In this document: piece by piece, positions 17,976 to 59,300 of the stretch
How positions within the stretch are numbered: position 1 is the first letter of the stretch
Layout: each line of letters opens with the position of its first letter
Notes under the pieces: generated by a model
Databases searched by the model: none
Told to the model about the DNA's origin: nothing
Seen by the model: only the letters and a program-made list of their open reading frames with translations
Translations under genes and position numbers: made by a program
Assembly (NCBI RefSeq): GCF_018977255.1
Contig: NW_024704758.1
Location: 5,642,001 to 5,706,000 of the forward strand
Reading direction: 5' to 3'
DNA: 64,000 bases
Source: Callorhinchus milii
Lineage: Eukaryota

Positions 17976-18404
17976 CTGTAACTTGTAATGTTACAGACCC
18001 AATAAGAGGCACTTTGAGGGCCTCATGGACAACCTCAACCATTAATTCAGCTCCGTCATCCTTAGATAGGTCAGCACACATCCAAACGCTGCAGTTTACA
18101 CTGAACATCCCATTATTCTTCCGCACATAGTGGGGCATCACAGCAGTGAAGGAGCCATCTTCCTCACAGCCCTCTGTGACATTTTCGAGGGGAACACTGG
18201 CCGTCTTAGCTTCCTGTGGTTCCCCGTCTTTCTTTGGGATCCGCCAATGAAAGACTTTCTTTTTCTTCTGCTCCCCTTTCCTTTTCACAAAGGTAACAAT
18301 GGAGATGGCCCGTGGGCTGAAGCCAACAACTGCCCAGCTCAGGCTGGCCAGCTCCCCGGGCGTGATCTCAGAGGGTTTCTTGATTTCAGTGATTTGGGGA
18401 GGAA
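17976..18404 (-). CDS. Gene B post-TM Ig-like domain 5
   Basis: 429 nt, AG/GT; VPPQITEI...[10 protein letters not shown]...GMFSVNC...[12 protein letters not shown]. Confidence 0.88.
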
Positions 18405-35911: not shown

Positions 35912-35958
35912 TCATTTGAATCTCCCACTGTGTTGTGTTTGGCGAGATGCTGATTCAC
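35912..35958 (-). CDS. Gene A terminal coding exon, copy 2
   Basis: Duplicate of 41260-41306; ATTAAA at 35451-35456. Confidence 0.55.
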
Positions 35959-36904: not shown

Positions 36905-37336
36905 CTCCCGTAACGTGTAATTTTAACTTCTCAATGAGAGGTTCACAAACACCAAGAGCCTCGTGCTGAACCTGAACAGTTAATTCAGCTTCATTATGCC
37001 TGGACACGTCAGGAGTCACGGTGATGCTGCACTTTACTCTGAAGGTTCCGTCTTTGTCTTTTTCACATTTGGGCACCTGAGCAGCGAACGAGGCATCTTT
37101 ATTGCGTCCATCTGATAGGTGTTTGAGAGAAAAGGCACTTCCCTTCCCTTCAAATGTTTTCTTATCTTGAGCTTCCCAATGAAACAGTTGCCTAATTTGC
37201 TCTCCATTCCTCTGTAGACTGGAAATAATCGACATTTTCCCAGGAGTGAACCCAGTCACTGCCCATTGCAGCTCGGTTTTCTCACCGTGTTTAATTTCCT
37301 TGGGCTTGGACTCAATTGTAGTAATTTTAGGAGGAA
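36905..37336 (-). CDS. Gene A post-TM Ig-like domain 8 (third copy of the domain-6 exon)
   Basis: 432 nt; same protein as domain 7; flanking introns match those of 43397-43828. Confidence 0.72.
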
Positions 37337-39410
37337 CTACAAAACAAAATGACAAACCTGATGTAAACATTCTAGTCTTTTTCTGCGTGAGACACAAACC
37401 AAATACACGGAAACAAGTGAAAAGCCTGGACATCGTGACAAGAGAAAGGAAGAGAAAAAGTGGGAAAGAGGGACAAAGAGAGACAGGAAGAGAGGGAGAG
37501 ATCTTCACACAGAGGGAGAGACATAGACAATGGGAGACACTCCCTTTTCTTTTCGATGGTGCTGTGGGATTTTTAACATTTAGCTAAACAGTTAGGCGGG
37601 ACTGTGGTTCAACAACTGAACCAAAAGATGGCACCTCCAGCATTGCAGGGCTCCCCCAGGACACACTGCAGTGCTATCCTTGGAAAGAGTTTAACTGAAA
37701 GTTGTGTGTGAGAAAACTGACTTTCAGGAGACAAGAGCTAATTTCCCTCACAAGCCTTTGTCCATTCCCCAACCGTAAAAAGCTGACATATCTCACAGAT
37801 ACTGTTTCCTTGCTTATAATGCCTATAAGCAATGTGAGTGACCTTAAAGCATGGTTGTTTGTAACTCTCACATTGCTTCACACACAATTTATAATCTAAG
37901 TCTTCAGCAAAGCTTCAGAAACAGCTTCACACTATTAGAGAGAACAGCAGACAATGCTGCCGGCTGATGCTGAGCGGGACCATGACCACAGAGTCTCATC
38001 ACTTCTCCATCAACCTACAACAGAGCTACACCCAAACACAACTACAACCTCATCCTGTAAAATGTACACACTGTAATATTGTTACTCAGAGTACTTATAT
38101 CCTCTGCACAGTGTGTTGACAGTATTGAGGCTGTTCCTTCCCAGCTGCAAAGTGCTACCACTGCTCCAGGCTGACATACAAATGGAGCAGCACAGCCACT
38201 GCCCCAGGTCAGCTCAGATCAACTCCCTGCCAACCGCACTCAAACCTTAGAGCTTTTGGCCACATTGTGGTTGTCAGAATCGAAAGCCATGACGATGACT
38301 GTGGCTGTTACACACGGGGAGAGACTGGCAATCGCACTGTCTTCACAAACCATCCATCTGGCGGCTGGAAGCATGAAAATTTCCACCATCTAAACCAAAG
38401 GAAATTTCAATAGATTAATCACAAAAACAGCACGACTCATAAGTCTTTTTATGTTTTCAAAGCAAGCTCATGGAAACGTTTAAGAAATCTTTACACAGTA
38501 CAGCAATGTGCGTGATACAGAGTTATTTAAAAGTTGGGGAACAGCATAACTTCTATTTCTTTATTCTTCTTGTGCGTATTCTTGTATCTTTCTCTTCTAT
38601 CTTCCTCACAAGACTGTTCAGAAGACAAGCAGTTACAAAAGCTACATTTATTCCCACTTGCTTGCTTAATCGTTTCTTCAATTCACAAGCTGCAACACCA
38701 CCGGTTGGTTTATAACACAATAATTATCATTAGAACATTCCTTCTCCCGTGACTACATGTTGATCACATTGGTAAACAAGGGACTTAGATAAGGAAGCAC
38801 AGCTTGCACAAGTAAACCAGTGACATGAGATTAGGAGGCTCCAATTTCTCCAATTATGACACAAGACCATTTCTGCACTTGTGACCCAAGGCCATCCCAT
38901 TAACACATACATCAACGCTGTTTCTTTGTTCCAACTCTCACCCAAGACATGGATCATCTTGTAGTGCATCCCTTCTCCTCTTTAACGTAACCAATGAACC
39001 AAGGAAAGGATAATTAATATCCATCAGGTCCAAACCGAGAAATGTCACAAAATGATCAATACAACCTCACTTCAAAGTATACCAGTTTGTAGGATCACTT
39101 GCGAGACAATAATCACGCCTGAAATGGTTTCAAAAAATTATAGACTTTATTAATCAACAATAATAGTGAATCCAGTTAAACTGCCAATAAAAGCACAGTC
39201 AAATGCAGCAATGACGACTTTATAAGAGACCATAATATAGTAGCAACTCATTCAGAGATTATGCTATTGATCAGTTAACTTCTCTGGAAAAGGAATGACT
39301 TGTCTTAGCCAACTGCTTCTTCAGGCACCTCGTACTGAACTTTGACTAAACTTCCATTTTTACATCCCAATTATTATTATTAAATCCTACTTTTAGATAC
39401 AGCAGAACAA

Positions 39411-39735
39411 ATAATAATATAGTAATAATCCTTGCATTTGATATAGCGCTTTTCACGTCGGGAGGACGTCCCAAAGCGCTTCACAGAACACACTGTAAAG
39501 TGAATTGACTGTATATTAGTGGGCGAACGCAGCAGCCAATTGCGCACAGCAATGTCCCACAAACAGTCGTAGATTGAAAATGACCAATTTAATTATTGTT
39601 TTTGTTTTTTGGAGGGATTATTATTAGGCGTGTGGAGTAAGGAAACTTGCCCAAGGTTTCGCCCTCTGCCTGGAATTGAACTCAGGTCCTTCGCTTGCAA
39701 CGCGAGTACTCTAACCACTGAGCTACAGGACTCCA
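39411..39735 (-). mobile_element. Full-length tRNA-derived SINE, same family
   Basis: Inserted at cagaacaa|aggttaag, which is empty in the duplicate at about 35130. Confidence 0.9.
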
Positions 39736-41259
39736 AAGGTTAAGAAACTTCCATGATATGCAAAATGCATAATAAAACAGTATAATAGTTGACTTAATTG
39801 CTCTATAATGTTAAAGTGATTACAAATATATGTTTCATTCTGGCGAAGCTGAGCAATGCTATATAATACACATATATATGGCAAGAGCAACACAACCATG
39901 ATGTTTCAGCACAAATTGGAGTTGCATGTGACAAGATGTTAACCAGAGTTAAAGACTTTGGCTTCTGTCTTGTCAACATTCAGCTGCAGAAAGTTGACTC
40001 TCCTCCATCCCTTGACAAGCAAGTGGACAGAACATCGGTGGACCTGCAGTTGCAGCTGGAGAAGGAGAAACAGTCAACCACATATACATGCAACTTGACC
40101 AATTTCTGCAGAGCATAAACAAAGAAAAGTAGATGACCAAGGATAGAACCTTGGGATATGCCACAGGAGAACCGGGGACAGGGGAGAGGAAAATGGGATG
40201 GCATGATCAAAACAGAACATAGAAAAAAACAACTATTATGGTGGCTGGGCACATCTCATTTGTGACAGTCACTCGATCAAAAAATTATCACTTTCCAATA
40301 GCCGATGAGTCAAAGTACAACCTGAAGCACACAGACAAGGAGGTCACACTTCCTGCTCAGGGCTAAGTCCACTGATCGCAGCCAGGGCAGCAGTTGGGTG
40401 CTCCAATTGGTCTTGTTGTCCGGGGATAGTGAGAAGGGCTGAATTACTTTCTCTTCCAGGTCAGAAAATCGCAGCCTGGAATTGGCGCCTTTCTCAACAG
40501 CGTCAGGGCTTGTGCTCAGCGTTGACGGGAAGCCACCTTCGTGAAACCAGATCCATCCGTAACAACAACGACAACAACAACAAAATTACATTTATCGAGC
40601 GCCTTTCATGTCCCTCGCAGCACGTCCCTGGACAGCACTGTACCCACGTCACATAACACAGTCTATGGCTTTACAGACTGTGACGTGTATGATGGTTTGG
40701 GATTCTTTCCACTGACTGACTCGGGAGCAGGAATCTGAGAAACATGCAGCGAAGCACCATAGTGAAAAACAAAACTAGTTTGCGAGCGTTTAATAACAGA
40801 CAGAAGCAAAGCACCGACACGTTAAGCCTTTGCTCTTAACAGAATTATCATTACACAGTGTTTCTTTATACTTCTGCAAAACTGATACATTTCTCATCAC
40901 TTTCCAATAACTGCCAAAGCTGATCAATAGTCACATTGTGGTTGTCAGAATCGAAAGCCATGACGATGACTGTGGCTGTTACACACGGGGAGAGACTGGC
41001 AATCGCACTGTCTTCACAAACCATCCATCTGGCGGCTGGAAGATTGAACATTTCCACCTCCTAAACCAAAGGAAATTTCAATAGATTAATCACAAAAACA
41101 GCACATTTCAGTCCAACAAACACCTCATCATAACTTGTAAGTATTAAAAAAAANGTTTGCTTCATTTAACAAAGTGACTGTGGAGAACTGGAAGACAGCA
41201 AGTAGGATAGGTAGTTACGTGGACAAGGATTGTAGCTCTGAGCAGATGGTGAGGCCTCT

Positions 41260-41306
41260 TCATTTGAATCTCCCACTGTGTTGTGTTTGGCGAGATGCTG
41301 ATTCAC
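41260..41306 (-). CDS. Gene A terminal coding exon, copy 1 ([15 protein letters not shown]-stop)
   Basis: Acceptor tttgtctccacag|GT GAA TCA..., in frame with phase-1 donors, TGA at 41260-41262; ATTAAA about 470 nt downstream (40789-40794). Confidence 0.6.
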
Positions 41307-44300
41307 CTGTGGAGACAAATTTCAGAGAAAGTTATTGCTCAGAAAGGGTTATTATTGGGACAAACATATTTATATACTTAACATCCATGAAGTGAATTAT
41401 ACCCATGGTGCTGATCGGGAGGTGAGCTTTGTTTATATTCTTTATTAATTACCAGGGTTTCTCATGTCTCAGTCCAGACAGTTCATACACACAGGGCCCC
41501 AGAGACCAAATGGAGCAGCACAGCTACTGCCCCCAGGTCAGCTCAGATCAGCTCTCAGACCAGAACTCGAACCTAAGATCTTCTGACCTGAGAAGCTCAA
41601 CACTGTTCTGAGCAGTGACTTCAGCTGCTGGGCCATCGGGGAGCAAATCATTACAATATCCTAAACATTGTCACAGAGCACGAGAGACAGAGAGGACACC
41701 TACCTCCCGTAACGTGTAATTTTAACTTCTCAATGAGAGGTTCACAAACACCAAGAGCCTCGTGCTGAACCTGAACAGTTAATTCAGCTTCATTATGCCT
41801 GGACACGTCAGGAGTCACGGTGATGCTGCACTTTACTCTGAAGGTTCCGTCTTTGTCTTTTTCACATTTGGGCACCTGAGCAGCGAACGAGGCATCTTTA
41901 TTGCGTCCATCTGATAGGTGTTTGAGAGAAAAGGCACTTCCCTTCCCTTCAAATGTTTTCTTATCTTGAGCTTCCCAATGAAACAGTTGCCTAATTTGCT
42001 CTCCATTCCTCTGTAGACTGGAAATAATCGACATTTTCCCAGGAGTGAACCCAGTCACTGCCCATTGCAGCTCGGTTTTCTCACCGTGTTTAATTTCCTT
42101 GGGCTTGGACTCAATTGTAGTAATTTTAGGAGGAACTACAAAACAAAATGACAAACCTGATGTAAACATTCTAGTCTTTTTCTGCGTGAGACACAAACCA
42201 AATACACGGAAACAAGTGAAAAGCCTGGACACCGTGACAAGAGAAAGGAAGAGAAAAAGTGGGAAAGAGGGACAAAGAGAGACAGTAAGAGAGGGAGAGA
42301 TCTTCACACAGAGGGAGAGACATAGACACTGGGAGACACTCCCTTTTCTTTTCGATGGAGCTGTGAGATTTTTAACATTTAGCTGAATAGTTAGGCGGGA
42401 CTATGGTTCAACAACTAAACCGAAAACGGCACCTCCAGCATCGCACGGCTCCCCCAACACACACTGCAGTGTCATCCTAAGAAAGAGTTTAACTGAAAGT
42501 TGTGTGTGAGAAAAACAACTTTCAGGAGACAAGAGCTAATTTCTCTCACTGGCCATTCACTGTTCACTCCCCAACCTTAGAAAGCTGACTTATCTCACAG
42601 ATACTGTTTCCTTGCTTATAATGCCTATGAGCAAGATGAGTGACCTTAAAGCATGGTTGTTTGTAACTTCTGCAATGTGCACTGAACTGGGGAACATGCT
42701 GTGAGTTGGCATATTTGCGGTTAAAGTTCAGACATTGCTGAAACAGGCTGAGTATATGTATGGGCTACTAATCACAAGATAGAGAGAGAGGAGAAAGAGA
42801 GAGAGAGACAGCCAAGGAAAAGAAACTGAGAAGTAAGAGACCACATGAGCTCACTCAGGGGAAAGGTAACTGATCACTGCTACTTCTGAGTTTGTCACTA
42901 CTTTATCTGGAAACTTGGATACTGTCTGGTACGTGTATAACCATTGTCTTCAGAACTTATTTAACAAAGGAAACTGGAATTTGAAATTGATTTACTTGTG
43001 GAGACAATTTGGGAGAAGCTTATTGCTCAGCAATGGTTTTTATTGGGACAAAAATATCTGTATACCTAACATCCTTAAAGTGATAGATAACCACAGTGAT
43101 GATCAGGGGGTGAGCTTTGATTATATTTTCTACTTATTACCAGGAACTCTTCTGTCTCAGCTTAGACAGTTAACGTGGGCAGGAGATTCACACACAGAGA
43201 CCAAATGGAACAGCACAGCTACTGCCTCGGTCAGATCAGATCAGATCCCAGAACAGCACTTGAAACTTGGAGCTTCTGACCTGAGAAGCTCAACACTGTA
43301 CTGAGCAGTGACTTCAGCTGCTGGGCCATCGGGGAGCAAATCATTACAATATCCTAAACATTGTCACAGAGCACGAGAGACAGAGAGGACACCTACCTCC
43401 CTTAACGTGTAATTTTAACTTCTCAATGAGAGGTTCACAAACACCAAGAGCCTCGTGCTGAACCTGAACAGTTAATTCAGCTTCATTATGCCTGGACACG
43501 TCAGGAGTCACGGTGATGCTGCACTTTACTCTGAAGGTTCCGTCTTTGTCTTTTTCACATTTGGGCACCTGAGCAGCGAACGAGGCATCTTTATTGCGTC
43601 CATCTGATAGGTGTTTGAGAGAAAAGGCACTTCCCTTCCCTTCAAATGTTTTCTTATCTTGAGCTTCCCAATGAAACAGTTGCCTAATTTGCTCTCCATT
43701 CCTCTGTAGACTGGAAATAATCGACATTTTCCCAGGAGTGAACCCAGTCACTGCCCATTGCAGCTCGGTTTTCTCACCGTGTTTAATTTCCTTGGGCTTG
43801 GACTCAATTGTAGTAATTTTAGGAGGAACTACAAAACAAAATGACAAACCTGATGTAAACATTCTAGTCTTTTTCTGCGTGAGACACAAACCAAATACAC
43901 GGAAACAAGTGAAAAGCCTGGACATCGTGACAAGAGAAAGGAAGAGAAAAAGTGGGAAAGAGGGACAAAGAGAGACAGGAAGAGAGGGAGAGATCTTCAC
44001 ACAGAGGGAGAGACATAGACAATGGGAGACACTCCCTTTTCTTTTCGATGGTGCTGTGGGATTTTTAACATTTAGCTAAACAGTTAGGCGGGACTGTGGT
44101 TCAACAACTGAACCAAAAGATGGCACCTCCAGCATTGCAGGGCTCCCCCAGGACACACTGCAGTGCTATCCTTGGAAAGAGTTTAACTGAAAGTTGTGTG
44201 TGAGAAAACTGACTTTCAGGAGACAAGAGCTAATTTCCCTCACAAGCCTTTGTCCATTCCCCAACCGTAAAAAGCTGACATATCTCACAGATACTGTTTC

Positions 44301-47300
44301 CTTGCTTATAATGCCTATAAGCAATGTGAGTGACCTTAAAGCATGGTTGTTTGTAACTCTCATAATGCTTCACACACAATTTATAATCTAAGTCTTCAGC
44401 AAAGCTTCAGAAAGAGCTTCACACTATTACAGAGAACAGCAGACAATGCTGCCGGCTGATGCTGAGCGGGACCATGACCACAGAGTCACATCACTTATCC
44501 ATCAACCTACAACAGAGCTGCTCCCAAACACAACTACAACTCATCCTGCAAAATGTACACACTGTAATATTGTTACTCAGAGTACTTATATCCTCTGCAC
44601 AGTGTGTTGACAGTATTGAGGCTGTTCCTTCCCAGCTGCAAAGACGTGACCCTTGGATGAGATGTTAAACCAAAGTCTTGTTTGCCTGTTCAGTTGGGCA
44701 TTAAAGATCCTGTGGCACTATTCAAAAAGAGAAGGGAGTTCTCCCGGTGTCCTGACCAACAATCGCTGTCAAGAAATTGGTTCACCGCTTTGGCTCTTTG
44801 TGAGACATTGCTGTGTGCAATTGTGCTGCCACATTTGCCTAAAAATACGCAGTCACTCCATTTCACAGTGAATCTTGTGAAGCACTTTGAGATGGTCCTC
44901 CAGACATGATAAGGCATTGTACCAAAAGGCAAGGATTATTATTTTAGTCCTGTAGCATATTGGTTAGAGCTGACGTGTATCAAGCAACAGGACTCGGGTT
45001 CAATTCTCATACAGTGCAAAATCTAAATTTCCTTACACCACACACCTGTTTACTTAGCAGTATGTGATTGTTGATGGTGGATTGGAGGATCACATTCCAG
45101 GGTTAATAATCCCTCCAAAAAAAAAAATAATAATAATTTGGTCACTCAATCCACGATATTTGTGGGACACTGCTGTGAGTAATTGGCAACCGCATTTCAA
45201 ATCTATTTCTGTGTCAAGAAAACTGGAAATCAAATCCACAGAAACAAGTGAAAAGCCTGCACGTCATGGCAAAAGGCACCAGGCTGGAACTGTAGAATGG
45301 TGTTAAACTCCATCATAAGCGCACAGCCCGTCTGAGCCTCCAGTAATCTGCAAGAGCTGCTCCCAGACAGAGTGTACACTGTCTTTTGGGCAAATAAATA
45401 ATTGAAAGCTCTACATTTTATCCCAACTGAATACAAGAGAAAGGAAGAGAGAAAGTGAGGGAAGAGGGACAGAGAGAGAGATGCACCACACACAGGGAGA
45501 GAGAGATAGAGGAACAGCACAGACTGCAGTGGCATCCGAGTGTAAGGAAAGAGTTTAACTGAAAGTTATGTGTGAGGAAAATGACTTTCAGGAGATATGA
45601 GCTAATTTATCTCACAGATACCGTTGATTTTGTTCACGCCCTGACCTTAAAAAGCTGATTTATCTTCGGTGGCCCTCCTCTTCGACCGTGCTTTCGATCA
45701 CCCTGAATCCCACCCTGCCCCCCACACTCCCCAATCCTGATCCTCAGCTCAGGTCCGAAACACTGACTGTCCAGCGCCTTGAGACGTCCTCCCAACATAA
45801 AAGGCGCTATACAAATGTAATTTTGTTGTTGTTGTCATCTCACAGATAGTGTTTCTTGGTACATCTACTGCCTATGAGCAAGATGAGTGACCTTAAGGCA
45901 TGATTGTTTGTAACTTCTGCAATATGGCAATGTGCACTTAACCTGGGAACAAGCTGTGAGTTGGCACATTTGGGGTTAAAGTTGAGTCATTGCCGAAACA
46001 TGCTTTGTATGTGTATGAGCTGCTAACACACGAGTGAGGGAGAGCGAGCAACCAAGGAAAAGAAACTGAGAAATAAGAGACTGCCTGAGCTCTCCCAGGG
46101 GAAGCTCTCCCAGTTTTCATTGACTTGAGAACTTCTGCAATAAAGGAAACTGTCATTTGAAATTGAAACCATTGTCAACAATCAAATTCTTTATAAGATA
46201 TTATCAACTCATTTCCTTATTACAAGTCACTGCATTAGATTGTAAGTTCAGGTCCCGATGGGATGTGAAATCACAACCTCCTGGACAAGAGATAACAGTT
46301 CTACACGTTCCGAGCCAACACCCATATTTATGTATATATAATGGTGAAATGTGTTACATTTTAATATTATGTATTTGTCAGAAATTATCAGATTATTTAT
46401 CACCCTGTATAAAATAATAAATCCACTTTAATCATGTGGAGCCCCGAATAAAGCCTCTCTTCACAAACAGCTTCAACGCTCACTTGAGAGATTAACAGTT
46501 CATTTCAAACGCTCCTCGTTGGCAAAATCATAACCTTTACCTGAATATTTCTACAGTGATGTGTGAGGGAGAGAGAGAGAGGAGACCAGACAGAGGCAGC
46601 ACTTACCCCCTTTAACATGTAATGTTACACATTTGATGAGCGATTCCTTCAGAGTCATATGTTTAACATTAACAATGTATTTTGTAGGCGAATTCAGCAG
46701 CCACATGCACACTGCAATGTCCCAGAAATTGCCATTGAGTGAGTGGCCAATTTTAGTTGTGGGATTGTTGTCCTGGACTCTGGGAGAAACTCCCTTCTCT
46801 TTTCGAATAGTGCCGATGGGTTCTTTAATATCCACCTGAACACGCGGGTGGAACCTTCGTTTAACATCTCGTCCAAAGTATAGCACTTCCAACAATGTAG
46901 CAAACCCCAGCAGCGCATTGGAGTGTCAGCTTAGACTATGTGATTCCAAGTCCTGACGTGGGGCTTGAACCCACAACCTTCTGACTCAGAGACAAAAGTG
47001 CTACCACTGCTTCAGGCTGACATACAAATGGAGCAGCACAGCCACTGCCCCAGGTCAGCTCAGATCAGCTCCCTGCCAACCGCACTCAAAGCTTAGAGCT
47101 TTTGGCCTGAGAGGCTCAACACTGTACTGAGCAGTGACCTCAGCTGCTGGGCCATCGGGGAGCAAATCATTACAATATCCTGAACATTGTCACAGAGCAC
47201 AAGGGACAGAGAGGACACCACACTGATAGCAGAACCTACCTGGAATAATGTGCAATATTACACTCTTCACGATAGAGGCATCAAGAGCCTCATGATGAAC

Positions 47301-50300
47301 TTCAACAGTTAATTCAGCTCCATCATGCAAGTTTATATCAGGAATCACATTGATGATGCAATTTACTCTGAAACTCCCATCTCCAATAGGTTCACATTTT
47401 TGCTCCTCAGCAGTGAAGGAGACAACTTGATTGTCTCTATCCGATCGGTTCTGGAGAGGAACATTTCTTCCTTTAAACTCTTGAAATGTTTCCTTTTTTG
47501 GAATTTCCCAGTGAAACAGTCGCACTTTTTGCTGTTGCTCTTTCCTCCTTAGACTAAAAACGATGGCCATTGCTCCAGGAGTGAAACGAGTCACTTGACA
47601 TTGCAGTGTGTCTTTCACACCATGCATAATTTGCTTGGGTAGTATGGGTCCATTAATTTCAGGAGGGTCTGTAAAACAGAAACATGATATAAACATTGCA
47701 GCATTGCACTCAGCGGGACTTGAACCCAAAACCTTCTGACACAGAGACATGAGCGGTACCAACTGCACCAGGCTGACACATAAACACAGCACCCAGTGGA
47801 ACTGAAACAAAAATGAGTCCTGTGTCATTTACATTCTGTTATATTGTTACTCTGAGAGTCTTTCGCCCACAAACACGTACAGTCAATTTACTTTGCAGTA
47901 CATTCTGTGAAGCGCTTTGAGACAATAATAATCCTTGCATTTGATATAGCGCCTTATCATGTCTTTGAGAGGTCTCAATGCCCTTCACAGAATATACTGC
48001 AAAGCAAATCGACTCCACTTTTTGTTGACAAAAATCGGCAGCTAATTGCGCACAGCAGTGACCCACAACAGTCGTGGATTGAGTGACCAAATTATTATTG
48101 GGTTTTTTTCAGGGAGTATTATCCCCAGAAAAGCGATCCGCCAATCGACTAACAAATAGGTTCCTGCTTATTGCAAGGTAAACAGAGGCTTGTGGAGTAA
48201 GGAAACTTGCCCAACATTTCAGCCAGGTCTCTCGCTTGAGTGGCAAGCGAATTAACCACTGAGCTACAGCACTTGGAGATGTCTCAACGATGTGATAAGG
48301 CGCATATCAAAATGCAAGGATTATTATTATTATTTATATCCTCTGCACGGTGTGCATAAAGGCTGTTACTTTCCAGCTGCAAAGATCTGATCTGCCCGAT
48401 ATCGTGAAGGTGAGAGATGTCCACAGTGCTGAACAGGAGATGAGCTTTGCTCATTTCATCTATTAATTACCATGTCTCAGCCCAGACAGTCAATGTGGGC
48501 AGACGATTCACACACGGAGACCAAATGGAGGAGCACAGCTACTGCCCCACCTCAGCTCAGTGCACCTGGGGGGAGGGGGGAAGCGTTGGTGGGCGGGGTC
48601 TCCACTGAGATGAGCTGGCTACAAGATGCTAATAATCTTTATAATCCTTGCAACTGATATAACACCTTAACATATCATCCAGATGTCTCACAGCGCTTCA
48701 AAGGATTTTAAAGTGAAGTACATTGACTGTGTATTTGAAGGGAGAATGTGTCAGCCAATTTGCACACAGCAGTGTTCCACAAACAGCCATGAAGTAAGTG
48801 ATGCATTTTATTTGGGAGATTGTTGGCCAGGACATGGGGACAAACTCCCTTCTCTTTTTGAACAGCTTGAGAACGGAATATTGGAATCCAGTCAATCCTC
48901 TGGAACAGTCTTGGAAGTTAAGTTCCCGATCCAAGTGGCTTCACAACAATCCAGAGCACTGCTGATTATAAACCAGCAGCCTGGCTCGTCGACAGGCCTC
49001 AGACAGGAAGACCAGTGACTGGAATCAGGGATTCTACCCACTCAGATCTTGGTAATCCTGAAAGCCAAAGCCTTAACAAGTAGTGCAGTCCTACCTGGAA
49101 ACAGCAAGCTATGTGCGTTTCCCTTGTTAAGCTCCAGCAGTATCCCAGCGCACACTCAGGGGTCCCCAAGCTATGCGTCTTGCCAACCTGCACCAAATAC
49201 TCTCTGGTATTAGGTAAGTAGGATGCATAACTACTGTGAGCGTTCCATTCTAAACACGGGGAAGTTTCCATGCGTAACTGGCATATATGAACTGTCTGGT
49301 TTGGATACCCTGAAGCACGGTGACGGGTTTTCTCAAATGCCAGACACCCGGCTGTCCAAAATAAACAGATCAGTGACCAGAGCTGCACATAGCCAGCGAC
49401 TTTCTGACCGGAGAGGCTCAGGGCTTCACTGAATGGGGACCTCAGTCGTTGGATCATCGGGAAGGAAACTGTTACTTTATCCTAAATATTGTCACAGAGC
49501 ACGTGGTGCAGAGAGGACACAATACTGATGGCTGAACCTACCTCCAGCAATGTTTATTCTTAAATGCTCAGTGACAGGCTCAGGCAATGCCTCATGATTA
49601 ACCTGAACAATTAAAACAGCTCCATCATCCGTGGACTCATTAGGAGTCATAACGATTCTGCAAGTAACTCTGAAGGTTCCATCTTTGGTGTCAGGTTCAC
49701 ATTTGGGCACCTCAGCAGTGAAGGCGGCATCTTTATTGTTTCTATCTGATCTGTCCTCAAGATGAAAGGATTTTGTTGAACTTCGAAATGCTTTCTTATT
49801 TGGAATTTCCCAGTGAAACAGTTGTCTTAGTGGCTGTTCTTTCCTCTGTAGACTGGAAACAATCGATATCGTCCCAGGAGTGAACCCAGTCACTGCACAT
49901 TGCAGCTCAGCTCTCTCACCATGTGTCATTTTCCTGGGTTTCGTAATTGTAATTTTAGGAGGAACTACAAAACAAAATGACAAACCCGATGGAAACATTC
50001 AAATCTATTTCTGTGTCAAACACAAACTGGAAACCAAATCCACAGAAACCAGTGAAAAGCCTGGACGTCATGGCAGAGGGCCCCAGGCTGGAGCTTTAGA
50101 ATGATGTAGAATGACATTAAACTCCATCATAAGCGCACAGCCCGTCTGAGCCTCCAGTAACCTGCAAGAGCTGCTCCCAGACAGGGTGCACTGTCCTTTC
50201 AACAAATAAATAATTTAAAATTCTCCATTTTATCCCAAATGAATACAAGGGAAAGGAAGAGAGAAAGTGAGGGAAGAGGGACAGAGAGAGATGCAAAGCA

Positions 50301-53300
50301 CAGGGATTGAAAGATAGAGGCCCAGTACAGACTGCATTGGCATCATATTGTCAGGAAAGAGTTTAACTGAAAGTTATGTGTGAGGAAAATGACTTTCAGG
50401 AGACATGAGCTAATTTATCTCACAGATAATGTTGATTTTCTTCACTCCCTGACCTCAAAAAGCTGACTTATCTTCAATGACCCTCCTCTTTGACCATGTT
50501 TTGAATCACCTTGCTTCTCCCGCCTACCCTCCACCCTCCCCAAACCTGACCCCCAGCTTAGGTCCGAAACACTGACTGTCCAGCGCCTTGGGACGTCCTC
50601 CCGACGTGAAAGGCGCTATGCAAATGTAATTATGTTGTTGTTGTTATCACACAGATAGTGTCTCTTGGTACATCTACTGCTAATGAGCAAGATCAAGTGA
50701 CCTTAAGGCATGGTTGTTTGTAACTTCCGCAATGTGCACTGAATCTGAGAACATGCTGTGATTTGGCACGTTTGTGGTTAAAGTTGAGTCATTGCAGAAA
50801 CATGCTGTGTATAAGTATGAGCTGCTAACACATGAGTGAGAGAGAACGAGCGATGAAGAAAAAGAAACTGAGAAGTAAGAGACTGCCTGAGCTCTCCCAG
50901 GGAAAGGGTAACTGATCACTGCTACTTCTCCTGATTTAGTTACTACCTTATCTAGAAACTTAGATACTGTCTAGTATGTGTATAACCACTGACTTAAGAA
51001 CTTCTGTAATAATTTTATCCCAACTGAATACAAGAGAAAGGAAGAGAGAAAGTGGCAAAGTAAGAGAGAGAGAGAGAGAGAGAGAGATGCACACACAGAG
51101 GGAGAGAGAGGTAGAGGACAAAACATTGGGAGAAATTCCCTTCTCTTTTAATGCTATGGGATTTTTAACATTTAGCTGAACACCAAGACGGGATCATGGT
51201 TTAACATCTCAACTGAAAGACTCCAGCATTGCAGGGCTCCCCCAGCTCACACTGCAGCGTCATCCTAGATTGTAATGAAGGAAATTATTATTTGAAATTG
51301 AAACCATTGTCGACAACCAAATTCTTTATAAGATATTATCAACTCATTTCCTTATTACAAATCCCTACACTAGACTGTAAGTTCAGGTCCTGATGTGAAC
51401 TCACAACTTTCTGGACAAGAGATAACAGAGCATATATAATAGTTTCAAATATTATATTTTAATATTATGTATTTGTCAGAAATCACCAGATTATTTCTAA
51501 TCTACAAAATAATCCATGTGATTGTGGAGCCCTGAATAAAGCCTCCCTTCACAAACAGCTTCAACTCTCCCTCTGGAGATTAACTGTTCATTTCAAACTC
51601 TCCTCGTTGGTAAAATCATTTGCTTCACCTAAATATTTCTACAGTTATGTGTGAGGGAGAGAGGGAGGAGATCAGACAGTGCAGCACTTACCCCCTTTAA
51701 CGTGTAATGTTCCAATTTTAGCTTCCTTCAGAGATCCCTTCAGAGCCTCGTGTTTAATTTGAACAATCAACTCAGCGCCATCATCCCTGGATACATCAGC
51801 ACACATGGTAACGTCGCACCTCACACCGAAAGTCCCAGTTGTTCTCTGTGTAATCACCGCCATCGAGGGAGTGATGGAGACATCCTGTGTGAGAGAGGTA
51901 ACTGGAATGCCTACTGGCTTGTTTCCTGCAGGTTGTTCTTTCTCTATCGTCTGCCAATAAAACAGTTTCTCTGGTGTCTGCTGCCCTTCTCTCTTCAGTA
52001 ATACAGCAATTTCAATGGGCCGTGGATTGAACCCAGACACTGACCAACTCAGAGTGGAGCAATCACAATGTGTCATGTCAATGGGCAGATGGATATCAGT
52101 AATTGTGGGAGGAGCTATAAAACAAACACAAGCAGCAGATAAAGATTAAATCCAGTTCCAGGACACACCGCACTGCCTCACACACACTTTACAATGTAAA
52201 CCTGCAGCAACACTTCAGAGTTACACAATATTACAACAATAGCAACTTCCATTTACACAGCAGCCTTTGTGCAGTGTAGTGTCTTGGAGCGTTTTTGAGT
52301 GCTTAACAATAGCGTAGTTTGACACTGAGGTGGGGAGAGTGGGAAGGTGATGGAAGGCAGCGTCAGAGAGTAAAACTCTTCAGGTATGATCTGAAGGGGG
52401 ATAGAGGGAGGCAATGTGGAGGGTTGAGGTAGGGAGATCCAGAGGTTCAGGGTATTGTTGCTGAATGCCAGGCTGCGGATGGTATAGTACAGGGGGTCAA
52501 GGGACATGTAGACGACCTGAGCAAATGACGGCAGTGGGTTGAGGAGTGGATGTGAGCAGGTTGGAAAGGTAGAGAGGTGCTCTGGCAAGAACAACAGGAT
52601 TACAACAAGATTACATTTGTATGGCGCCTATCAAGTCGGGAGGACGTCCCAAGGCATCCCAAGAAGTGATTTGTAGGCGAGTGTGAGGATTTCAAAATTG
52701 ATTTGTTTAAGTTACTCAAGTCAGATAACGTGTCAGAGTGATTTACAGTGATGGGTTCGTACACTGAGCATGGGTACAGGGGGGAGGGGGAAGCGACCAT
52801 AGGTATGGTCGCCTATGTGACAATACATCACTGTCACTACAAAAGTAACCATTGGTTCACAACTGATTGCAGGATAGAGGGACACATACAGTCACACGCC
52901 TGTACTACAACTCACAGATATAAGTGCCACATGGAGAGAGGAGACCACACAGAGATAGAACTTACCTGCAACATAAAATGTTACACATCCAGTGAGAGGA
53001 TTCTCCAGAGCCATATGTTTAACTCTAACAGTGAATTCAGCACCATTATCCCTGGATACATCAGCACACATGGTAACGCTGCAATTCACACCGAAAGTCC
53101 CTGTATCTGTCTGTTTTATCTTTGCCACCTCAGCAGTGAAGGAGTTAACCTGTGTAGTCTCCTTAACACTGGGGTTAATATCTGATGGGATTGTCTGCTT
53201 TTCTTTCTCTGGGATCTGCCAATGAAAGAGTTCCTTTGCTTCCTGATCCACTTTCCTCTTCACCAATACAGCAATTTCAATGGCCTGTGGATTGAAGCCA

Positions 53301-56300
53301 TTAACCTCCCACGTCAGAGCCACCTTGTCACCGTGCACAATACCAGTGGGCATCTTGATTTCAGTCATTGTGGGAGGAACTGTAAAACACAAGCAGCAGG
53401 TCAACATTATACTGTAATTCTGTAACAAGCCACACTGTGCCCAGCTACAAATCATAAAATCAATCCAGGGGCTCACACTGAGGTCTCACATTGAGCCCCT
53501 GGATTCCGCTTGGTCTTCAATATCAGGCTGGGCGTCAGGAGCACTTTTAGTTGCTCGCTGAGCTGCCTCCCTGTGCCCTATACCCGTGTCCTCTGCCCGT
53601 GCCCTCTCCTCAGGGCCCTCTCCCCAGGGCCTCTTCCACTGACTTCCAGTGTGACAGCATGTGACGAGTTCTCAGGCTGCTCTAAACTGACATCTAGGAG
53701 CTTCCATGTAACTCCTGATGACATGATCCAAAGTATAAAAGTGGTATGAACACAAACGGTCTCTCTGTGTTTTTATGTCTCCTCACACTCTCTATCTGTT
53801 TCCCCCCACAATCTACTTTCGTCTCTCTCCAAAGCTGAGAGAGAGAGAGAGAAAAAGAATAATACAGAGCGAAAGAGAGAGCGACAGACAGTGAGAGTTA
53901 CAGAGAGAGTCAGGTAGCGTCTATATTGCTAGGGGTGAAGGGGAAGTTCTCAGATTCCAATTGAAACACTCACAACCTTCTGACCCAAAGGCGAGTGTTA
54001 CCAACTGAGTCAATCTGTCACCTGAACTCACAGGGTTAATGGAGCATAAAATATGTCACGAGGTAACTATCTCAGCTGAGACAGTAACAATGTTCCAGGT
54101 GATTTGAAGAAGTGTTGAAGCAGCATGTCAATACGATCGGGTAAGAGAGAAGAGAAGAGAATTATGATGAGAGGAGATAGCTCGAGTGGAGGAATGAGCA
54201 ACAGTATAGGTGTAACAACAACAGAGAGAGCTGGGAAAACTCAGGTCAGGCAGCATCTATGGAGAAAGGAAAGTGAGTCAACGTTTCGGGTCCATGACCC
54301 TTCGTCAGAACGAAACGTTGACTCACTTTCCTTTCTCCATAGATGCTGCCTGACCTGCTGAGTTTTCCCAGCTCTCTCTGTTTTTGTTTCAGATTCCAGC
54401 ATCTGCAGTATTTTGTGTTTTGACCAGTATAGGTGTGATGGGGTGAAAGGCCCTCTGTGCTGTAATTATAAATGATAATGATAATAATTCTTGCATTTGA
54501 TGTAAATCCTTATCACATTGTTGAGACGTCTCAAAGCCCTCCACACAATACACCGTAAAATGTATTGACTATATTTTATGGGCAAAACGCAGCAGCCAAT
54601 TTCACACAGTAGTCGTGGATTGAGTGGCCAAATTAGTATTATTTTTTGTTGTTGGAAGGGATTATTAACCCTGGATTTCTATGATTCTATATATTCCGAA
54701 TGTTTGAACACCGACATGTAGGTGTTGCTGGGCGGGGGTGGGTGGATAGAGGTTGCACAATCCAATTCTTACCTTCAACTTCGAATTTTACAGATTTTTC
54801 GAGAGGCGTTTTCAGAGTCTTGTGATGAACTTTTACAGTCATTTGAACTCCGTCGTCCTCAGATACATCAGGACAGAATCCTATCAGACACTTTACACTG
54901 AAGGTCCCATTTTTGAGCTGAACACATCGTGGGGGCTCAGCAGTGAAGGAATTCACCCTCTCACATCCATCTTTTATATCTACGAGGGGAACACCTTCTT
55001 CAATCTGACATGACCTCTTTTCATCCTTTGGGAATTTCCAGACAAATAACGTCAGTTGTTCTTTTCTTTTCCTCGTCAGTAATACCACAATCTCTATCTC
55101 TTTTGCTTTGAATCCAGTAACTTCCCAACTCAGATCGGCACGCTGCCCATGTATAAAGTGAGTGGGTTTGTGGATTTCAGTGATCTTGGGAGGAGCTGTG
55201 AAACGTACAAAAAGTAGCATCAAATATTCAAATTCTCTAAAGAAACCTGAGTAATAATCAACACATTTACAACAACAATTTGCCCTTATATACCACCTTG
55301 CCAACATTGATACTTTCTCAAAGCACTTTATAGGAACTTTACAGTGTTCATCACTGAGCAAAGGGGCAAGAGAAAGCAGGGGAATGGTGACAGTGACCAA
55401 AAGCACAATCAAGCAGGTAAGTTTCTAGAAGGGATTTGGGTAAGCAGTCCAGAGAGCGGAGGCCTAGACACAGCCTTTCGCTATGTCATTAGCACAATAT
55501 TTGTTTCAGTTGATCATTGTGTCGGCTGATAGTTCTCTGTTGATAGAAAATGTGCACAAGAGCATTTAATGTTCAATAATTCACCGCCACATTTGCCATT
55601 GTACTTTAGGACTGTGAAGATCCTTACCTTGATTCCATTTCTTCCAAAAGCCAAATGCCGCTACAGCAAGGAGCACAATCACCAGCAGGCCAACGACACC
55701 TCCAATAACAGCTCCAGGCCCATTTCCTGCAGGTTCCTGTGGTTTCTTAACTACCACAGTCAGCTCTGCCTCCAGTGTAAAATTATCACTGAATGCTCTG
55801 TGCATCACCACACATCTGTACTTATCACCATCGTCATCCAGGGTTGGTGTGAGCCTCAACAGGTTGGAAACGCTGAATGTTCTGTCCCCGTTGGTAACTA
55901 CATCTTGTGTGAAGATACCTGTTGTAACCTCCATCTCCACACCACGTGATACCTTGACCCAGCTGATCTTGTGCGTCTGAGGGTAAAATCCATTAACATT
56001 ACACGTCAAAGTCACAACTGAATCGTTGATTACGATGATGTGACGTGGAGACACGGTGACCTTTGGCTGAGCTGTAGAGATCATAAAAATGCACTATATG
56101 AATACTCTCTTTTGGAGCAGCATTGTTATCTTCTAACCATAAGATACACACCAGTGACAACAACAACAATTTGCACTTATGTAGTGCACGCCATGCAGGC
56201 TAGAGTCTCAGAGCGCTTAACACTGGCGGAGCTTGCCTCCGAGCCAGTGGAGGGGGGAGGTGCCCATCAGCATGGTCGAAAAGGAAGGTTTTCAGGCAGG

Positions 56301-59300
56301 ACTTGAAAAAGGGGAGAGGGGGCAAGGTGGAAGAGAGAGAGAGTGTTCCAGAGTTTCAGGGTGTAGTGGCTGAATGCGCGATCTCCAATGGTGGAGGGGA
56401 GAGTGCAAGGGACAAGCAGGAGGCTGGTGCCAGTCTAAGCGGAGGAGCCGGGTGGTGGGATTGAGGAGTGAGGAGGTCAGAGAGGTAGGGAGGTGCCAGG
56501 GAGTCAAGGGATTTGAACACAAGTGTGAGGATCTTGAAGTCGATCTGTTCAGTGATGGGCAGCTCATGGAGACTGACCAGAATAGACCAGAACCACTGTT
56601 CACCAAAGGTCACCTTGTACCGAGTTTGGTCCATGTTAGTATGTGGGCAGCAGAGTTCTGAATGAGCTGGATTTTTTGAATGTGTTTGAGTAATCCAGGC
56701 GGGATGTGACAAAAGCATGCACAAGAGTTTCGGCTTCATTTGGGGAAAGGTCGGAGGCAGGCAATGTGGCGGCGGGGGAGGAAGACGGTCCTGGACAGGG
56801 ACCAGATGTGGGGAAGGAAGATTGGTTCGGTGGGTCTGAGGGTAAGGCCAGGGAGGTTGAAGAGTTCAGATCCATAGGAGTGAAATCGTTGACGGTAGCC
56901 AAGGAGTATGGCTTCCATCTTGTCCACTTTCAGCTGCAGGAAGTTTTATAATACAACTCATATTTATTTCAGACTCAGCAATAGGAAGATGGAATTTTTT
57001 TCAAATCCGTCTTCATTCAGAAGCCAGTTTTTCCCTTTTCTGAAAAGGACTGCCTTCCTAATTCAATCCAATGGAACAATTTTGTACAACACTTAGATTT
57101 TAAGACAAAATAATTTCCGACGCGTTAAGACTAAATGGAATTTCAACCCAAGATTTGTGAACTGAGCCCAGTGCAATAGACACGTATCACATTTAATCTT
57201 GGCAAGTTAACGAAACAAGTTGCATTGCTACAAGTCAACAGAAGAATGAGGTAACTATTTTTTTCCACAAATTAAGCATCTGACTGAGATCGGTTAACTG
57301 AGATGGCATCGGCATCAATGGTTTCTTAAGCAGGGGGTCAATTACAATCACTCTGACTGATGGGTTGTTTATTAACTGGGATTTGTGGTCAACATCAGCT
57401 AGGGCTCTCAGAGGGGAACATATAGAGGTGTAAAACATTTGAAATGGGATTGAAAAAATAAGCTTGACTCAGTCTGACGTAGACCATATTTTATGATGCA
57501 CCAAAATGGTAGAACAAGAGGTTACAGGTTTAAAGTTCCAATTAGTAATTTCAGGACAGACACCAGAAAGTATTTCTTGATCCAGACGGTAATTGGTAAT
57601 TAATGACTGGAACAGGTTGCAAGGAAGGATGGTTGAGGCCGGGACACAGGAATAGCTTGATGCAGTGACGGGAGGATGGGTATACTGGATGCTTGAGCTC
57701 AGATGGGCTGTAAAGCCAACTTCATCTGAACCGATTTTTTGATCTTGTGAATACAGCATTACAATTCCCCACTACAACATACACACCTGGCAAGATGCTT
57801 CACTGTGCTTACCTGACACCAGTACGGCTGAACTCTTTTCTTCTTTTGATGCAATTGGTGAGAAATAAACAATACATTTGTACACTCCTGCTTCGGATAT
57901 CTGAATCTTCGGAAGATGTAGGGAGGCGTCTCCTCTCCGCAGGTTTTCTATTATTATTCTTGATCCAGTTCTGACAGCTCTAAACGTCCCTCCATTATAT
58001 GAATACACCTCACCCAACTCCAAAAACCACTGAACAGCAACTATTTCACGGCGTTTCCCCTCCAGAGTTTTGAGGGTCACATTACATTTGAGGACAACAT
58101 CTTCATTCAGCAACACATCCAGTGGACCTTTAAATATTGTCATCCCCAAAGCATCTGTGTAAAAGCAGGAGGCATTCCAAAACATTAATGAAAGTTAAGC
58201 ATTTTAAATGTCAGAATAGCAGGTTTGATTATCTGAGATGAGAAGCAGGTTAAAAACCATGGATTAGGATTAGTTGCTGCTTCAAGAACATTGTAGAAAG
58301 GGAATTCAGTCCTACCCATGGATTTGGTGACCAAGGGAGACAACAACAAAATTACATTTGTATATCGCCTTTCACATCGGGAGGAAGTCCCAAGGCACTG
58401 AACAGTCAGTGTTTCAGAGCTGAGGGGAACGTAGGGAGTGGACAGGTTTTGGAGGTCACAGAAGTAGGCCATGGAGGGCTTTGAAAGTGAGGACGAGGAT
58501 CTTGAACTGTGTCCTCTCTGTGATGGGAAGCCAGTGGAGTCAGGCGAGGGTGGGGTTGATTGGGTTGTGGAGCTTGATGCAGGAGAGAACTTGGGTTGCA
58601 GAGCTCTGGATGATCTGCAGCCTTAGGAAGGAGGAGATCGGGAGGACGACATGCAGGCAGTTTGCGTAGTCGAGCCTGGATGTTATGAATGCATGTATGA
58701 GGGTTTCGATGGCCTGTGGTGTCAGACAGTGGTGGAACTGAGCAATGTTGCAGAGAAGTAGAATTGGGTATCATCCACATACATGTGGAAGTTAATCCCA
58801 TGTCTGCAGATGATGTCACCAAGGGGGAGCATAAAGATATTGAAAAGGAGTGGGCCAAGGACAGAACCCTGAGGGACACCACATACAACGGTGCAGGAGC
58901 TGGAGGAGAAGCCGTTACTAGCAATAAAGCAGAGATGGTGGGAAAGGATTCGAACCAGGCAAGGGCAGGTCCACGAAGATTGAGTTGAGAGGAGAGGCGG
59001 TGTAGGAGGATACAATGGTTGACAGTGTCGAATCAACAACAACAATATTACATTTCTAAAGAGCCTTTCACATCGGAGGATGCCAAAGGTGTTGAACAGT
59101 CAGGGATCAAGACCCGAGCATGGGGGGGTAGAGTTGGGATGAGGGAGGACACAGAGGCAGGAGGACGGCTGAAGGCACGGTCAAAAAGGAGGGCCTTGAG
59201 TAGTGCCTTGAAGGAAGCAAGGGGGGGGAACAAGGTGAAGGGAGTGTGGAATAGGGTTCCAAAGGGTGGGGACAGAGAGGCTGAAAGCCTGACCACTGAT

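Follow-up and report, generated by a model that had tools for sequence, protein, structure and literature searches.

C1-set domains are seen as a hallmark of extracellular adaptive immunity, being found in immunoglobulins, T-cell receptors, MHC molecules, beta-2-microglobulin, tapasin, SIRP and B7-H6. To our knowledge, they are otherwise known only outside the cytosol. A gene (gene A) in the 64,000-nucleotide stretch of Callorhinchus milii DNA analysed here (the window) raises the question of whether an array of C1-derived domains can form the cytoplasmic tail of a B7-H6-like membrane protein, as the initial annotation had inferred. If so, this array would be the first of its domain type to work inside the cell, and the extracellular rule would be broken. 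We find that gene A is a real, conserved and undescribed variant of the B7-H6 lineage, and that its layout is not a local accident.

The exons of gene A are as follows.

61411..61483, minus strand: leader exon, located by peptide search; 24-residue leader, phase-1 donor CAG/gtacag, in frame with the V exon
57813..58154, minus strand: V-set exon, 342 nt, phase 1-1; Pfam V-set match of 27.8 bits (cutoff 26)
55628..56071, minus strand: exon for the C1-set domain, the transmembrane (TM) segment and KKWNQ, 444 nt; acceptor tctctacag/, donor AAG/gtaagg, phase 1
54773..55195, minus strand: repeat R1, 141 codons
52966..53379, minus strand: repeat R2, 138 codons
51692..52114, minus strand: repeat R3, 141 codons
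49542..49964, minus strand: repeat R4, 141 codons
47240..47668, minus strand: repeat R5, 143 codons
43397..43828, minus strand: repeat R6, 144 codons
41704..42135, minus strand: repeat R7, 144 codons, one amino acid different from R6
41260..41306, minus strand: terminal exon copy T1, 15 residues, 3' of R7
36905..37336, minus strand: repeat R8, coding sequence identical to that of R7
35912..35958, minus strand: terminal exon copy T2, the T1 peptide and a stop, 3' of R8

The exon at 56071-55628 encodes a C1-set domain (Pfam E 1e-13), a 24-residue hydrophobic stretch and KKWNQ, and runs without a stop to its phase-1 donor; the first description of it is confirmed. Downstream, where seven or eight open exons had been reported, there are eight repeat exons of 414-432 nt, all open, divisible by 3 and in phase 1-1, each with a pyrimidine tract and AG acceptor and a GT donor. 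The first of them is separated from the TM exon by an intron of just 432 nt. Canonical splice sites flank all 11 introns of the gene, and every junction is phase-compatible. The range originally assigned, 36905-56071, is right for the repeats and the C1-TM exon but not for the gene limits, which take in the leader (from 61483), the V exon (58154-57813) and T2 (35958-35912). Similarly, the proposed 1293-aa product stands as a model with seven repeats and T1, whereas eight repeats and T2, the copy used by RefSeq, yield 1437 aa. With R8 identical to R7, and R6 only one residue away from R7, the repeat count (seven or eight) is uncertain. The RefSeq model (P0168, with its TM segment at 132-150) lacks the leader and V exon and begins in a repeat-like stretch. 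The leader is identical to that of a paralogue, P0167.

The B7-H6-like character ascribed to the ectodomain is borne out by comparison with solved structures, in which human B7-H6 is the best match (3PV6/4ZSO; E 2.5e-21) and CD276 the next (8.5e-17). Like gene A, human B7-H6 (NCR3LG1, the ligand of NKp30) has a leader, a V-set domain, a C1-set domain and a single TM segment. The two proteins differ in their tails: that of human B7-H6 is short, Gag-related and equipped with signalling motifs, whereas that of gene A comprises seven or eight Ig-fold modules (~1000-1150 aa) and 15 further residues.

The expectation that the repeats fold as Ig domains is supported by several observations. They share the C1-like motif quoted in the initial annotation (alignment A1), and they align over their full length with the window's own C1 domains (hhalign probability 96%, E 4e-9). 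The AF2 model of R1 is a beta-sandwich of nine strands (pLDDT 89.5, pTM 0.84), and all top Foldseek matches of the repeat model are Ig domains, with TM-scores of 0.5-0.58, typically ~0.55. In Pfam searches with four repeats, the C1-set profile gave borderline matches to two (22.0 and 17.7 bits; cutoff 21) and none to the other two, and no I-set match appeared at E values up to 1; the signature of titin/obscurin-type intracellular I-set domains is thus not matched. Nor was there a SPRY or PRY match, as expected of a B30.2 domain, in the repeats tested. His124, in the VxH motif of the F strand, is invariant in the aligned repeats. The canonical Cys...Trp...Cys pattern is absent: of 11 aligned repeats, nine have Trp and two have Cys where the B-strand cysteine is expected, and its F-strand partner is replaced by Val, Leu or Ile. 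The alignment contains no cysteine column that reaches 90%; each repeat has two to five cysteines, mostly three, at variable positions. Judging by sequence and model, the repeats are Ig-fold modules descended from the gene's own C1 domain. Relative to this ancestor, the module has gained ~35-40 residues in two insertions and no longer has the canonical cysteine pair.

A profile search returned 365 relatives. Dozens of them carry V-C1-TM followed by this module within ~10 residues, and they come from chimaera, sharks, rays, coelacanth, lungfish, bichirs and amphibians. The junction itself (TM, basic residues and a module within ~10 aa) occurs in ~55 protein predictions, drawn from over 20 species. 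Relatives with this layout are either unnamed or called NCR3LG1(-like), a name that RefSeq also gives to one C. milii paralogue. We found no published description of a V-C1-TM-Ig-array architecture. It is not new to the databases, which contain gene A as the uncharacterized LOC103173843 and frog relatives of 1051-1085 aa as NCR3LG1.

One of these relatives, the conserved C. milii gene LOC103174895, lies on the same scaffold as gene A, ~40 kb away, and has the architecture V-C1-TM-D1..D7, with its own relatives ranging from chimaera to amphibians. The TM-to-module junction is also carried by the C. milii UniProt entry V9K7L7, which is probably transcript-derived; V9K entries presumably stem from the assembled RNA-seq transcripts JW861113-JW881738. 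These assembled transcripts were deposited with the genome paper (PMC3964593). In the conserved gene (LOC103174895/V9K7L7 in C. milii, LOC102345720 in Latimeria, NCR3LG1 in frogs), an ectodomain of the same type as that of gene A is followed by the TM segment and at once by the same long, disulfide-less D1 module. Only one D1 is present there, and after it come ~six distinct domains of C1 type, some of them retaining the canonical cysteines; gene A, on the other hand, has D1-type modules only, in amplified form. All eight gene A modules score as D1 type (176-201 bits) and cluster with D1, which in the RefSeq model P0168 starts at 160, a distance from the TM segment that dozens of relatives share. 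The gene A array arose by amplification of D1, the domain that comes first after the membrane in this older gene.

A D1-only subfamily is not peculiar to the chimaera. Elasmobranch genes with V-C1-TM and tandem D1 modules (Heterodontus XP_067902347-52, Scyliorhinus torazame XP_072322181 and Stegostoma LOC125459499) form a clade sister to the C. milii repeats, the two grouping at 99/95 support. The elasmobranch modules are near-identical within a gene and are joined by acidic low-complexity linkers, whereas those of C. milii follow one another without a gap and belong to several old subtypes. The window also holds a paralogue of gene A, gene B, which has the same plan without the V exon.

17470..31477, minus strand: gene B
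31477-31405, minus strand: gene B leader
28804-28361, minus strand: gene B C1+TM exon
26525-26094, 24162-23731, 21809-21378, 19702-19271 and 18404-17976, minus strand: the five gene B repeats
17483-17470, minus strand: gene B terminal exon, DGGN*

RefSeq lists an 895-aa product at the gene B locus. In genes A and B, C1 and TM share one exon. The TM segment has its own exon in the conserved paralogue LOC103174895 and in gene C, as well as in the elasmobranch D1-only genes, for which a skipped isoform is annotated; from the first two of these arrangements we conclude that C1 and TM became fused in genes A and B. The TM exon of LOC103174895 is 114 nt long and in phase 1-1, so the frame is kept when it is skipped. 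In the gene A subfamily, the fusion means that the anchor cannot be removed by exon skipping.

The repeat exons bear signs of constraint. At the observed divergence, a 140-codon frame drifting neutrally would stay free of stops 4-16% of the time; none of the 13 repeat exons of genes A (eight) and B (five) contains a stop, and dN/dS among repeats is 0.27-1.1. These values argue that selection has maintained the frames. R1-R5 are old (dS 0.4-1.3), R6-R8 are nearly identical duplicates, as are the copies of the terminal exon, and the repeat subtypes of gene A have been retained in three further C. milii genes. Such fast change, both of sequence (dN/dS 0.3-1.1) and of copy number, suggests either an immune arms race or a loose, spacer-like constraint. 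A dN/dS near 1 for several repeats also fits weak function.

On which side of the membrane, then, does the array lie? As had been stated, neither a leader nor a second TM segment was found among the repeat exons; a hydropathy scan of the gene A model reveals one TM segment, with KKWNQ after it, and no other within the repeats. A type I anchor normally leaves what follows it in the cytoplasm, and the array is accordingly predicted to lie, and likely lies, on the cytoplasmic side. N-glycosylation sequons are enriched in the ectodomains (147 observed against 100 expected) and at chance level after the TM segment (230 against 211). Two conserved sequon columns occur in the ectodomain (9/20 and 11/20), and none exceeds 4/20 in ~800 post-TM residues. 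The chance-level, unconserved sequons, the lost disulfides and the scattered unpaired cysteines all fit a cytosolic array. The conserved paralogue supplies a counterargument. Its D2 retains Cys-Trp-Cys at 100/100/94% (16 orthologues), and its D3 and last domain keep the cysteine pair in C. milii and Latimeria, as read by eye; these cysteines fit oxidative folding and thus count against the cytosol.

We put at about even the chance that gene A, maintained by selection, belongs to a B7-H6 (NCR3LG1) subfamily of cartilaginous fish and encodes a membrane-bound V-C1 ectodomain with the module array as its cytosolic tail. The default product would be a type I membrane protein displaying V-C1 outside as a putative ligand for NKp30-type receptors. 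Its array, with no linkers between modules, could form a rod-like cytosolic tail, and this tail may provide a scaffold or a platform for binding, through which something intracellular is linked to how the ectodomain is displayed or clustered. Butyrophilins (BTN3A1 and others) would be a parallel: they are B7-related V-C proteins with one TM segment and a large folded cytoplasmic domain, B30.2/SPRY, that can sense the cell interior and alter what the ectodomain presents to lymphocytes. The resemblance is one of logic only, as the repeats tested have no SPRY match. More tentatively, we suggest a wider history: an ancient (>400 My) branch of jawed-vertebrate B7-H6 whose main isoform has a cytosolic C1-derived array, and in which a TM cassette toggles that array between cytosol and secretion. 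In chimaeras, the C1-TM fusion would have locked the toggle to the membrane, and the disulfide-free module would have been amplified into a fast-evolving tail that reports on, or is targeted by, something intracellular.

It is also conceivable, if rather unlikely, that the array works outside the cell, the key product being a secreted, TM-less poly-Ig protein and the long TM form a B7-H6-like membrane ligand with a tail that is a by-product. The skippable TM exon of the conserved gene would permit this, and RefSeq isoform pairs in Bombina, Rana, Heterodontus and Hemitrygon differ exactly by the TM segment (31-38 aa, in frame); a TM-less model exists for Scyliorhinus torazame as well. The Cys-Trp-Cys of D2 and the strong C1-set matches of the conserved gene's post-TM domains (215 bits in total) favour this reading too. 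However, most models retain the TM segment in every species, and ordinary receptors commonly show some minor TM-exon skipping, so its occurrence is no proof that the tail was built for secretion. The post-TM sequons are at chance level and unconserved, and an amplified module with unpaired cysteines and no disulfide would be unusual for a secreted protein. In gene A, with its fused exon, secretion would depend on a cryptic donor at 55700; no other phase-1 GT precedes the TM core. Use of this site would excise the hydrophobic core in frame, and gene B has a phase-1 GT at the matching position of its TM-coding part (28451), but the internal GT (GAG/gtgtcg) is a poor donor. It is improbable that the main product is instead a short, ordinary B7-H6-like protein ending in KKWNQ and 15 residues, made by read-through and intronic polyadenylation, with the repeats rarely included. 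Read-through of the 55628 donor does add just 15 codons before a stop, the intron contains an ATTAAA ~58 nt from its 5' end, and a database search across the TM-R1 junction matched only an Ensembl model. Yet the position of the ATTAAA is unmatched in gene B, and such a motif arises by chance fairly frequently in 432 nt; further, none of the 13 repeat exons has lost its frame or its splice sites even though dS reaches ~1, and predicted proteins from many species share the long architecture.

That gene A is a young, decaying or unexpressed copy in a birth-and-death cluster, its repeats intact through recent duplication, would account for the near-identity of R6-R8 and the terminal exon, for dN/dS of ~0.9-1.1 in several pairs, for the missing V exon of the neighbouring gene B and for the unconvincing 5' end of the RefSeq model. 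We regard this as very unlikely, given that R1-R5 are old yet open, all introns are canonical, the leader and V exon are intact and the repeat subtypes persist in other genes. Least credible of all, and hardly to be entertained, is a fusion by gene predictors of two genes, the Ig exons being a separate leader-bearing unit. Certain Ensembl fragments do begin at a Met just upstream of single repeats (e.g. 11 residues, then VPPK), but these "leaders" are translated acceptor pyrimidine tracts with only ~8-10 hydrophobic residues. The short TM-R1 intron, the compatible phases and the fused frame in >20 species, including the V9K7L7 entry, also speak against it.

The outcome matters whichever way the array faces. 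The long Ig tail is present in chimaera, sharks, rays, lobe-finned and basal ray-finned fishes and amphibians, and the human tail is unrelated to it; this distribution bears on the ancestral B7-H6/NKp30 axis. Should the cytosolic reading fail, the family would instead contain a secreted/membrane switch in which one small exon moves a thousand residues across the membrane. The skipped TM cassette of the four relatives with isoform pairs employs the same mechanism as soluble receptors, e.g. cytokine receptors, but here ~800-1200 aa of folded domains would be moved from the cytosol to the secretory pathway, and gene A lacks a separate cassette. The shark gene UrIg2 encodes a VJ domain, nine C1 domains and a TM segment, with all C1 domains before the TM (PMC12227049). 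Like gene A, it belongs to the IgSF of cartilaginous fish, does not rearrange and has C1 exons that were duplicated in tandem and homogenised (PMC12227049). Its V domain, however, is of the VJ type, its C1 domains precede the TM segment in the ordinary topology, and its similarity to gene A is that of C1 domains in general.

Gene A (LOC103173843), a B7-H6-like gene on the minus strand of the window, belongs to the B7-H6 lineage and carries an array of Ig modules behind its membrane anchor. We reconstructed it as 12 exons, in which all introns are GT-AG and all internal coding exons are in phase 1-1. Its same-plan paralogue (gene B) and a third B7-H6-like gene (gene C) lie in the same window.

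Features of the three B7-H6-like genes (window coordinates)
61483-61411, minus: gene A, leader exon
58154-57813, minus: gene A, V exon
56071-55628, minus: gene A, C1+TM exon
55195-54773, minus: gene A, repeat R1
53379-52966, minus: gene A, repeat R2
52114-51692, minus: gene A, repeat R3
49964-49542, minus: gene A, repeat R4
47668-47240, minus: gene A, repeat R5
43828-43397, minus: gene A, repeat R6
42135-41704, minus: gene A, repeat R7
37336-36905, minus: gene A, repeat R8
41306-41260, minus: gene A, terminal exon [15 protein letters not shown], copy behind R7 (T1)
35958-35912, minus: gene A, terminal exon, second copy behind R8 (T2)
31477-17470, minus: gene B, five-module version of the gene A plan, ending in DGGN*; leader 31477-31405, C1+TM 28804-28361
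9232-11857, minus: gene C; V 11857-11519, C1 10662-10342, separate phase 1-1 TM exon at about 9333-9232

The RefSeq protein XP_042197504.1 (scaffold MU249848.1, ~5.67-5.71 Mb) is identical to the translation of the window. The model uses all eight repeats but omits the intact leader and V exons; thus, its 5' end is probably mis-annotated. Its start, [10 protein letters not shown], is a Met located between the V and C1 exons, within sequence that resembles a repeat (56605-56634, minus strand). Human B7-H6 is the best solved relative of the gene A ectodomain (E 2.5e-21), with CD276 behind it, and a near-identical C. milii paralogue is named "NCR3LG1-like" in RefSeq. The B7-H6-like ectodomain proposed in the initial annotation is therefore upheld. 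Pfam recognises a clear C1-set domain in the product of the C1+TM exon (E 1e-13); after it come [24 protein letters not shown], then KKWNQ, and the exon reaches its end at AAG/gtaagg without a stop, as had been described. Past the acceptor of the following 432-nt intron, the frame resumes in R1 as APPKITEI. A hydropathy scan found a single TM in gene A and no hydrophobic segment in the array, in agreement with the claim that a second TM is absent. The repeats also lack a leader, as had been claimed: Met-initiated hydrophobic stretches considered as a hidden leader before some of them were rejected, being translated pyrimidine tracts shorter than a signal peptide needs.

What are these repeats? 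Their profile aligned full-length to the C1 domains of the ectodomains encoded in the window (hhalign, 96%, E 4e-9), with two insertions making up the ~35-40 residues that they have in excess of C1. Among solved structures, constant domains of IgM matched the profile, and the C domain of B7-H6 did so less strongly. AlphaFold2 confidently predicted a beta-sandwich from an 11-sequence alignment (pLDDT 89.5), and Foldseek returned only Ig domains for the repeat model. Nanobody VH domains (7-12% identity) top that list because the repeats carry extra strands; C-type and V-type domains are not separable in this comparison, and the C1-derived class rests on the sequence profiles. The canonical cysteine pair is lost, the B-strand position being Trp in 9/11 and the F-strand position aliphatic. 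Each repeat has 2-5 cysteines, mostly 3, at positions that are not conserved. The repeats are C1-derived Ig modules without the structural disulfide. The original "C1-like" description thus holds for homology and fold, but "canonical C1" is too strong.

All 13 repeat exons (8 in gene A, 5 in gene B) are open, and their lengths differ by multiples of three only. A 140-codon frame stayed free of stops in only 4-16% of cases in a neutral simulation at the relevant divergence; the repeats, whose openness had been noted from the outset for the 7-8 of gene A, are not chance open frames. Pairs of repeats have dS of 0.06-1.3 and dN/dS of 0.27-1.1. Near-neutral dN/dS combined with strictly kept frames, block duplication and module shuffling could reflect diversifying pressure or, alternatively, a spacer-like role.

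The number of repeats depends on the segment at 35912-44075. There, R7 and R8 are identical and R6 differs by one residue; the coding sequences of R6-R8 are 99-100% identical and their flanks 97-99%. A single N stands at window position 41154. These duplicates of R6-R8 and the terminal exon either arose very recently in the genome or were created by the assembly, and the repeat count is accordingly 7 or 8. Because the terminal exon is present twice, after R7 and after R8, the product is 1293 aa or 1437 aa. The 1293-aa model first put forward is retained as the seven-repeat product using T1; use of R8 and T2 would give 1437 aa.

Gene A is not alone in its architecture. When 1.84 billion representative proteins were searched with a profile, 365 relatives emerged, 42 of them below 1e-30. 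In ~55 sequences among those inspected, the TM ends ~8-12 residues before the first module of D1 type, the type to which the gene A repeats belong. The relatives whose names were looked up come from cartilaginous fishes (Callorhinchus, Heterodontus, two Scyliorhinus species, Stegostoma, Cetorhinus, Mobula, Amblyraja, Narcine, Pristis, Hemitrygon), lobe-finned and basal ray-finned fishes (Latimeria, Protopterus, Erpetoichthys, Polypterus) and amphibians (Lissotriton, Pleurodeles, Bombina, Rana, Pseudophryne, Rhinophrynus, Dendropsophus). They are annotated as "uncharacterized" or, in frogs, as "NCR3LG1"; the architecture is thus already in public annotation, unnamed. The initial annotation knew of no description, and our full-text search (B7H6 in shark, elephant shark, Xenopus and cartilaginous fish; cytoplasmic or intracellular Ig domains) likewise found none, though papers on B7H6 evolution (PMC3709836, PMC4594805) may mention it.

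One relative, LOC103174895 (locus L001, 10001-23699), lies ~40 kb off on the scaffold and represents a conserved gene. It encodes a leader, a V and a C1 domain, has the TM on its own 114-nt exon and continues with a single long D1 and about six more domains of C1 type. A strongly acidic low-complexity linker precedes its last Ig domain, the last strand of which reaches the stop codon. In a tree of D1 modules, all C. milii repeats group with elasmobranch genes that have only D1-type modules behind the TM (99/95 support); the D1 of the conserved gene stands apart from them, and repeat subtypes are common to four C. milii genes. By this grouping, the amplified-module subfamily is older than the split between chimaeras and elasmobranchs.

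On which side of the membrane does the array lie? Several observations favour the cytosol. The anchor has the textbook form of a type I stop-transfer segment: basic residues stand behind it, and no TM comes later. Genes A and B encode C1 and TM on a single exon, and the anchor is therefore out of reach of exon skipping; the only in-frame GT upstream of the hydrophobic core (55700 in gene A, 28451 in gene B) makes a poor donor. The sequons of gene A alone are too few to tell compartments apart, but 55 pooled family members and a 20-orthologue alignment are informative. In the pooled set, the ectodomain has more sequons than expected (147 observed vs 100 expected), and behind the TM their number is at chance (230 vs 211). 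The alignment has two sequon columns in the ectodomain, in 9 and 11 species, whereas post-TM columns reach at most 4 each. The cysteine pair is absent everywhere in the amplified module. In the conserved protein, read by eye in C. milii and Latimeria, four of the seven domains behind the TM are without it. One or both canonical cysteines are missing from D4, D5 and D6, and D2, D3 and the last domain keep the pair.

In the most likely reading, to which we give an even chance, the default product of gene A would be a type I membrane protein that shows V-C1 outside as a putative ligand for NKp30-type receptors; behind the TM, 7-8 Ig modules that abut one another would form a rigid tail in the cytosol. 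Such a tail could serve as a scaffold or binding platform, by a logic likened to that of the butyrophilins with their B30.2 domain. A cytosolic location, if true, would be considerably more surprising than a mere variant of the B7-H6 lineage.

Secretion of the array in a TM-less form is unlikely, yet it retains appreciable weight. In Bombina, Rana, Heterodontus and Hemitrygon, RefSeq lists pairs of isoforms whose sole difference is the TM segment, removed in frame; this predicts secreted whole-array forms from sharks to frogs. Further, in a comparison of D1 and D2 across 16 orthologues, the D2 Cys-Trp-Cys is kept at 100/100/94%, as would be expected of a disulfide-bonded luminal domain. Jointly, these points keep the secreted reading alive. 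However, ordinary receptors often skip the TM exon at a low level, and a buried cysteine may stay conserved although it forms no disulfide; neither point decides against the cytosol. A short isoform, a decaying copy and a separate gene for the repeats are unlikely even when taken jointly. Reading through the TM-exon donor of gene A gives 15 codons and then a stop, and an ATTAAA lies 58 nt into the intron (55570-55627, minus strand). This signal, right after the TM exon, makes a short isoform through intronic polyadenylation possible, but it is rated weak and gene B has none at a matching position. A C1-TM-R1 query of a large protein collection yielded gene models only and no assembled-read proteins, hence no transcript support for gene A; a C1-TM-D1 query with the conserved gene gave the same result. 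The C. milii UniProt entry V9K7L7 (1079 aa) is a complete V-C1-TM-array chain. Such V9K entries presumably derive from transcripts that were assembled from RNA-seq and deposited alongside the genome paper. The accessions of those transcripts are given there (PMC3964593).

In gene B, tblastn found no V exon between 31405 and 28804; its product, 895 aa in RefSeq, would be a V-less B7-H6-like protein with five tail modules. Gene C is without D1-type modules and has an N gap at 9589-9719. A ~955-nt tandem unit occurs in 3-4 copies at 1900-5200. Its open frames on the minus strand abound in Gly, Lys, Glu and Ser and could represent repeated exons for a low-complexity tail of gene C, recalling the acidic linkers of elasmobranch relatives. 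An intron of gene B holds a retroelement reverse-transcriptase fragment (19894-20292, plus strand; Pfam RVT_1, E 1e-10), and one of gene A a stretch (58409-59099, minus strand), without a Pfam match, that resembles reverse transcriptase by eye.
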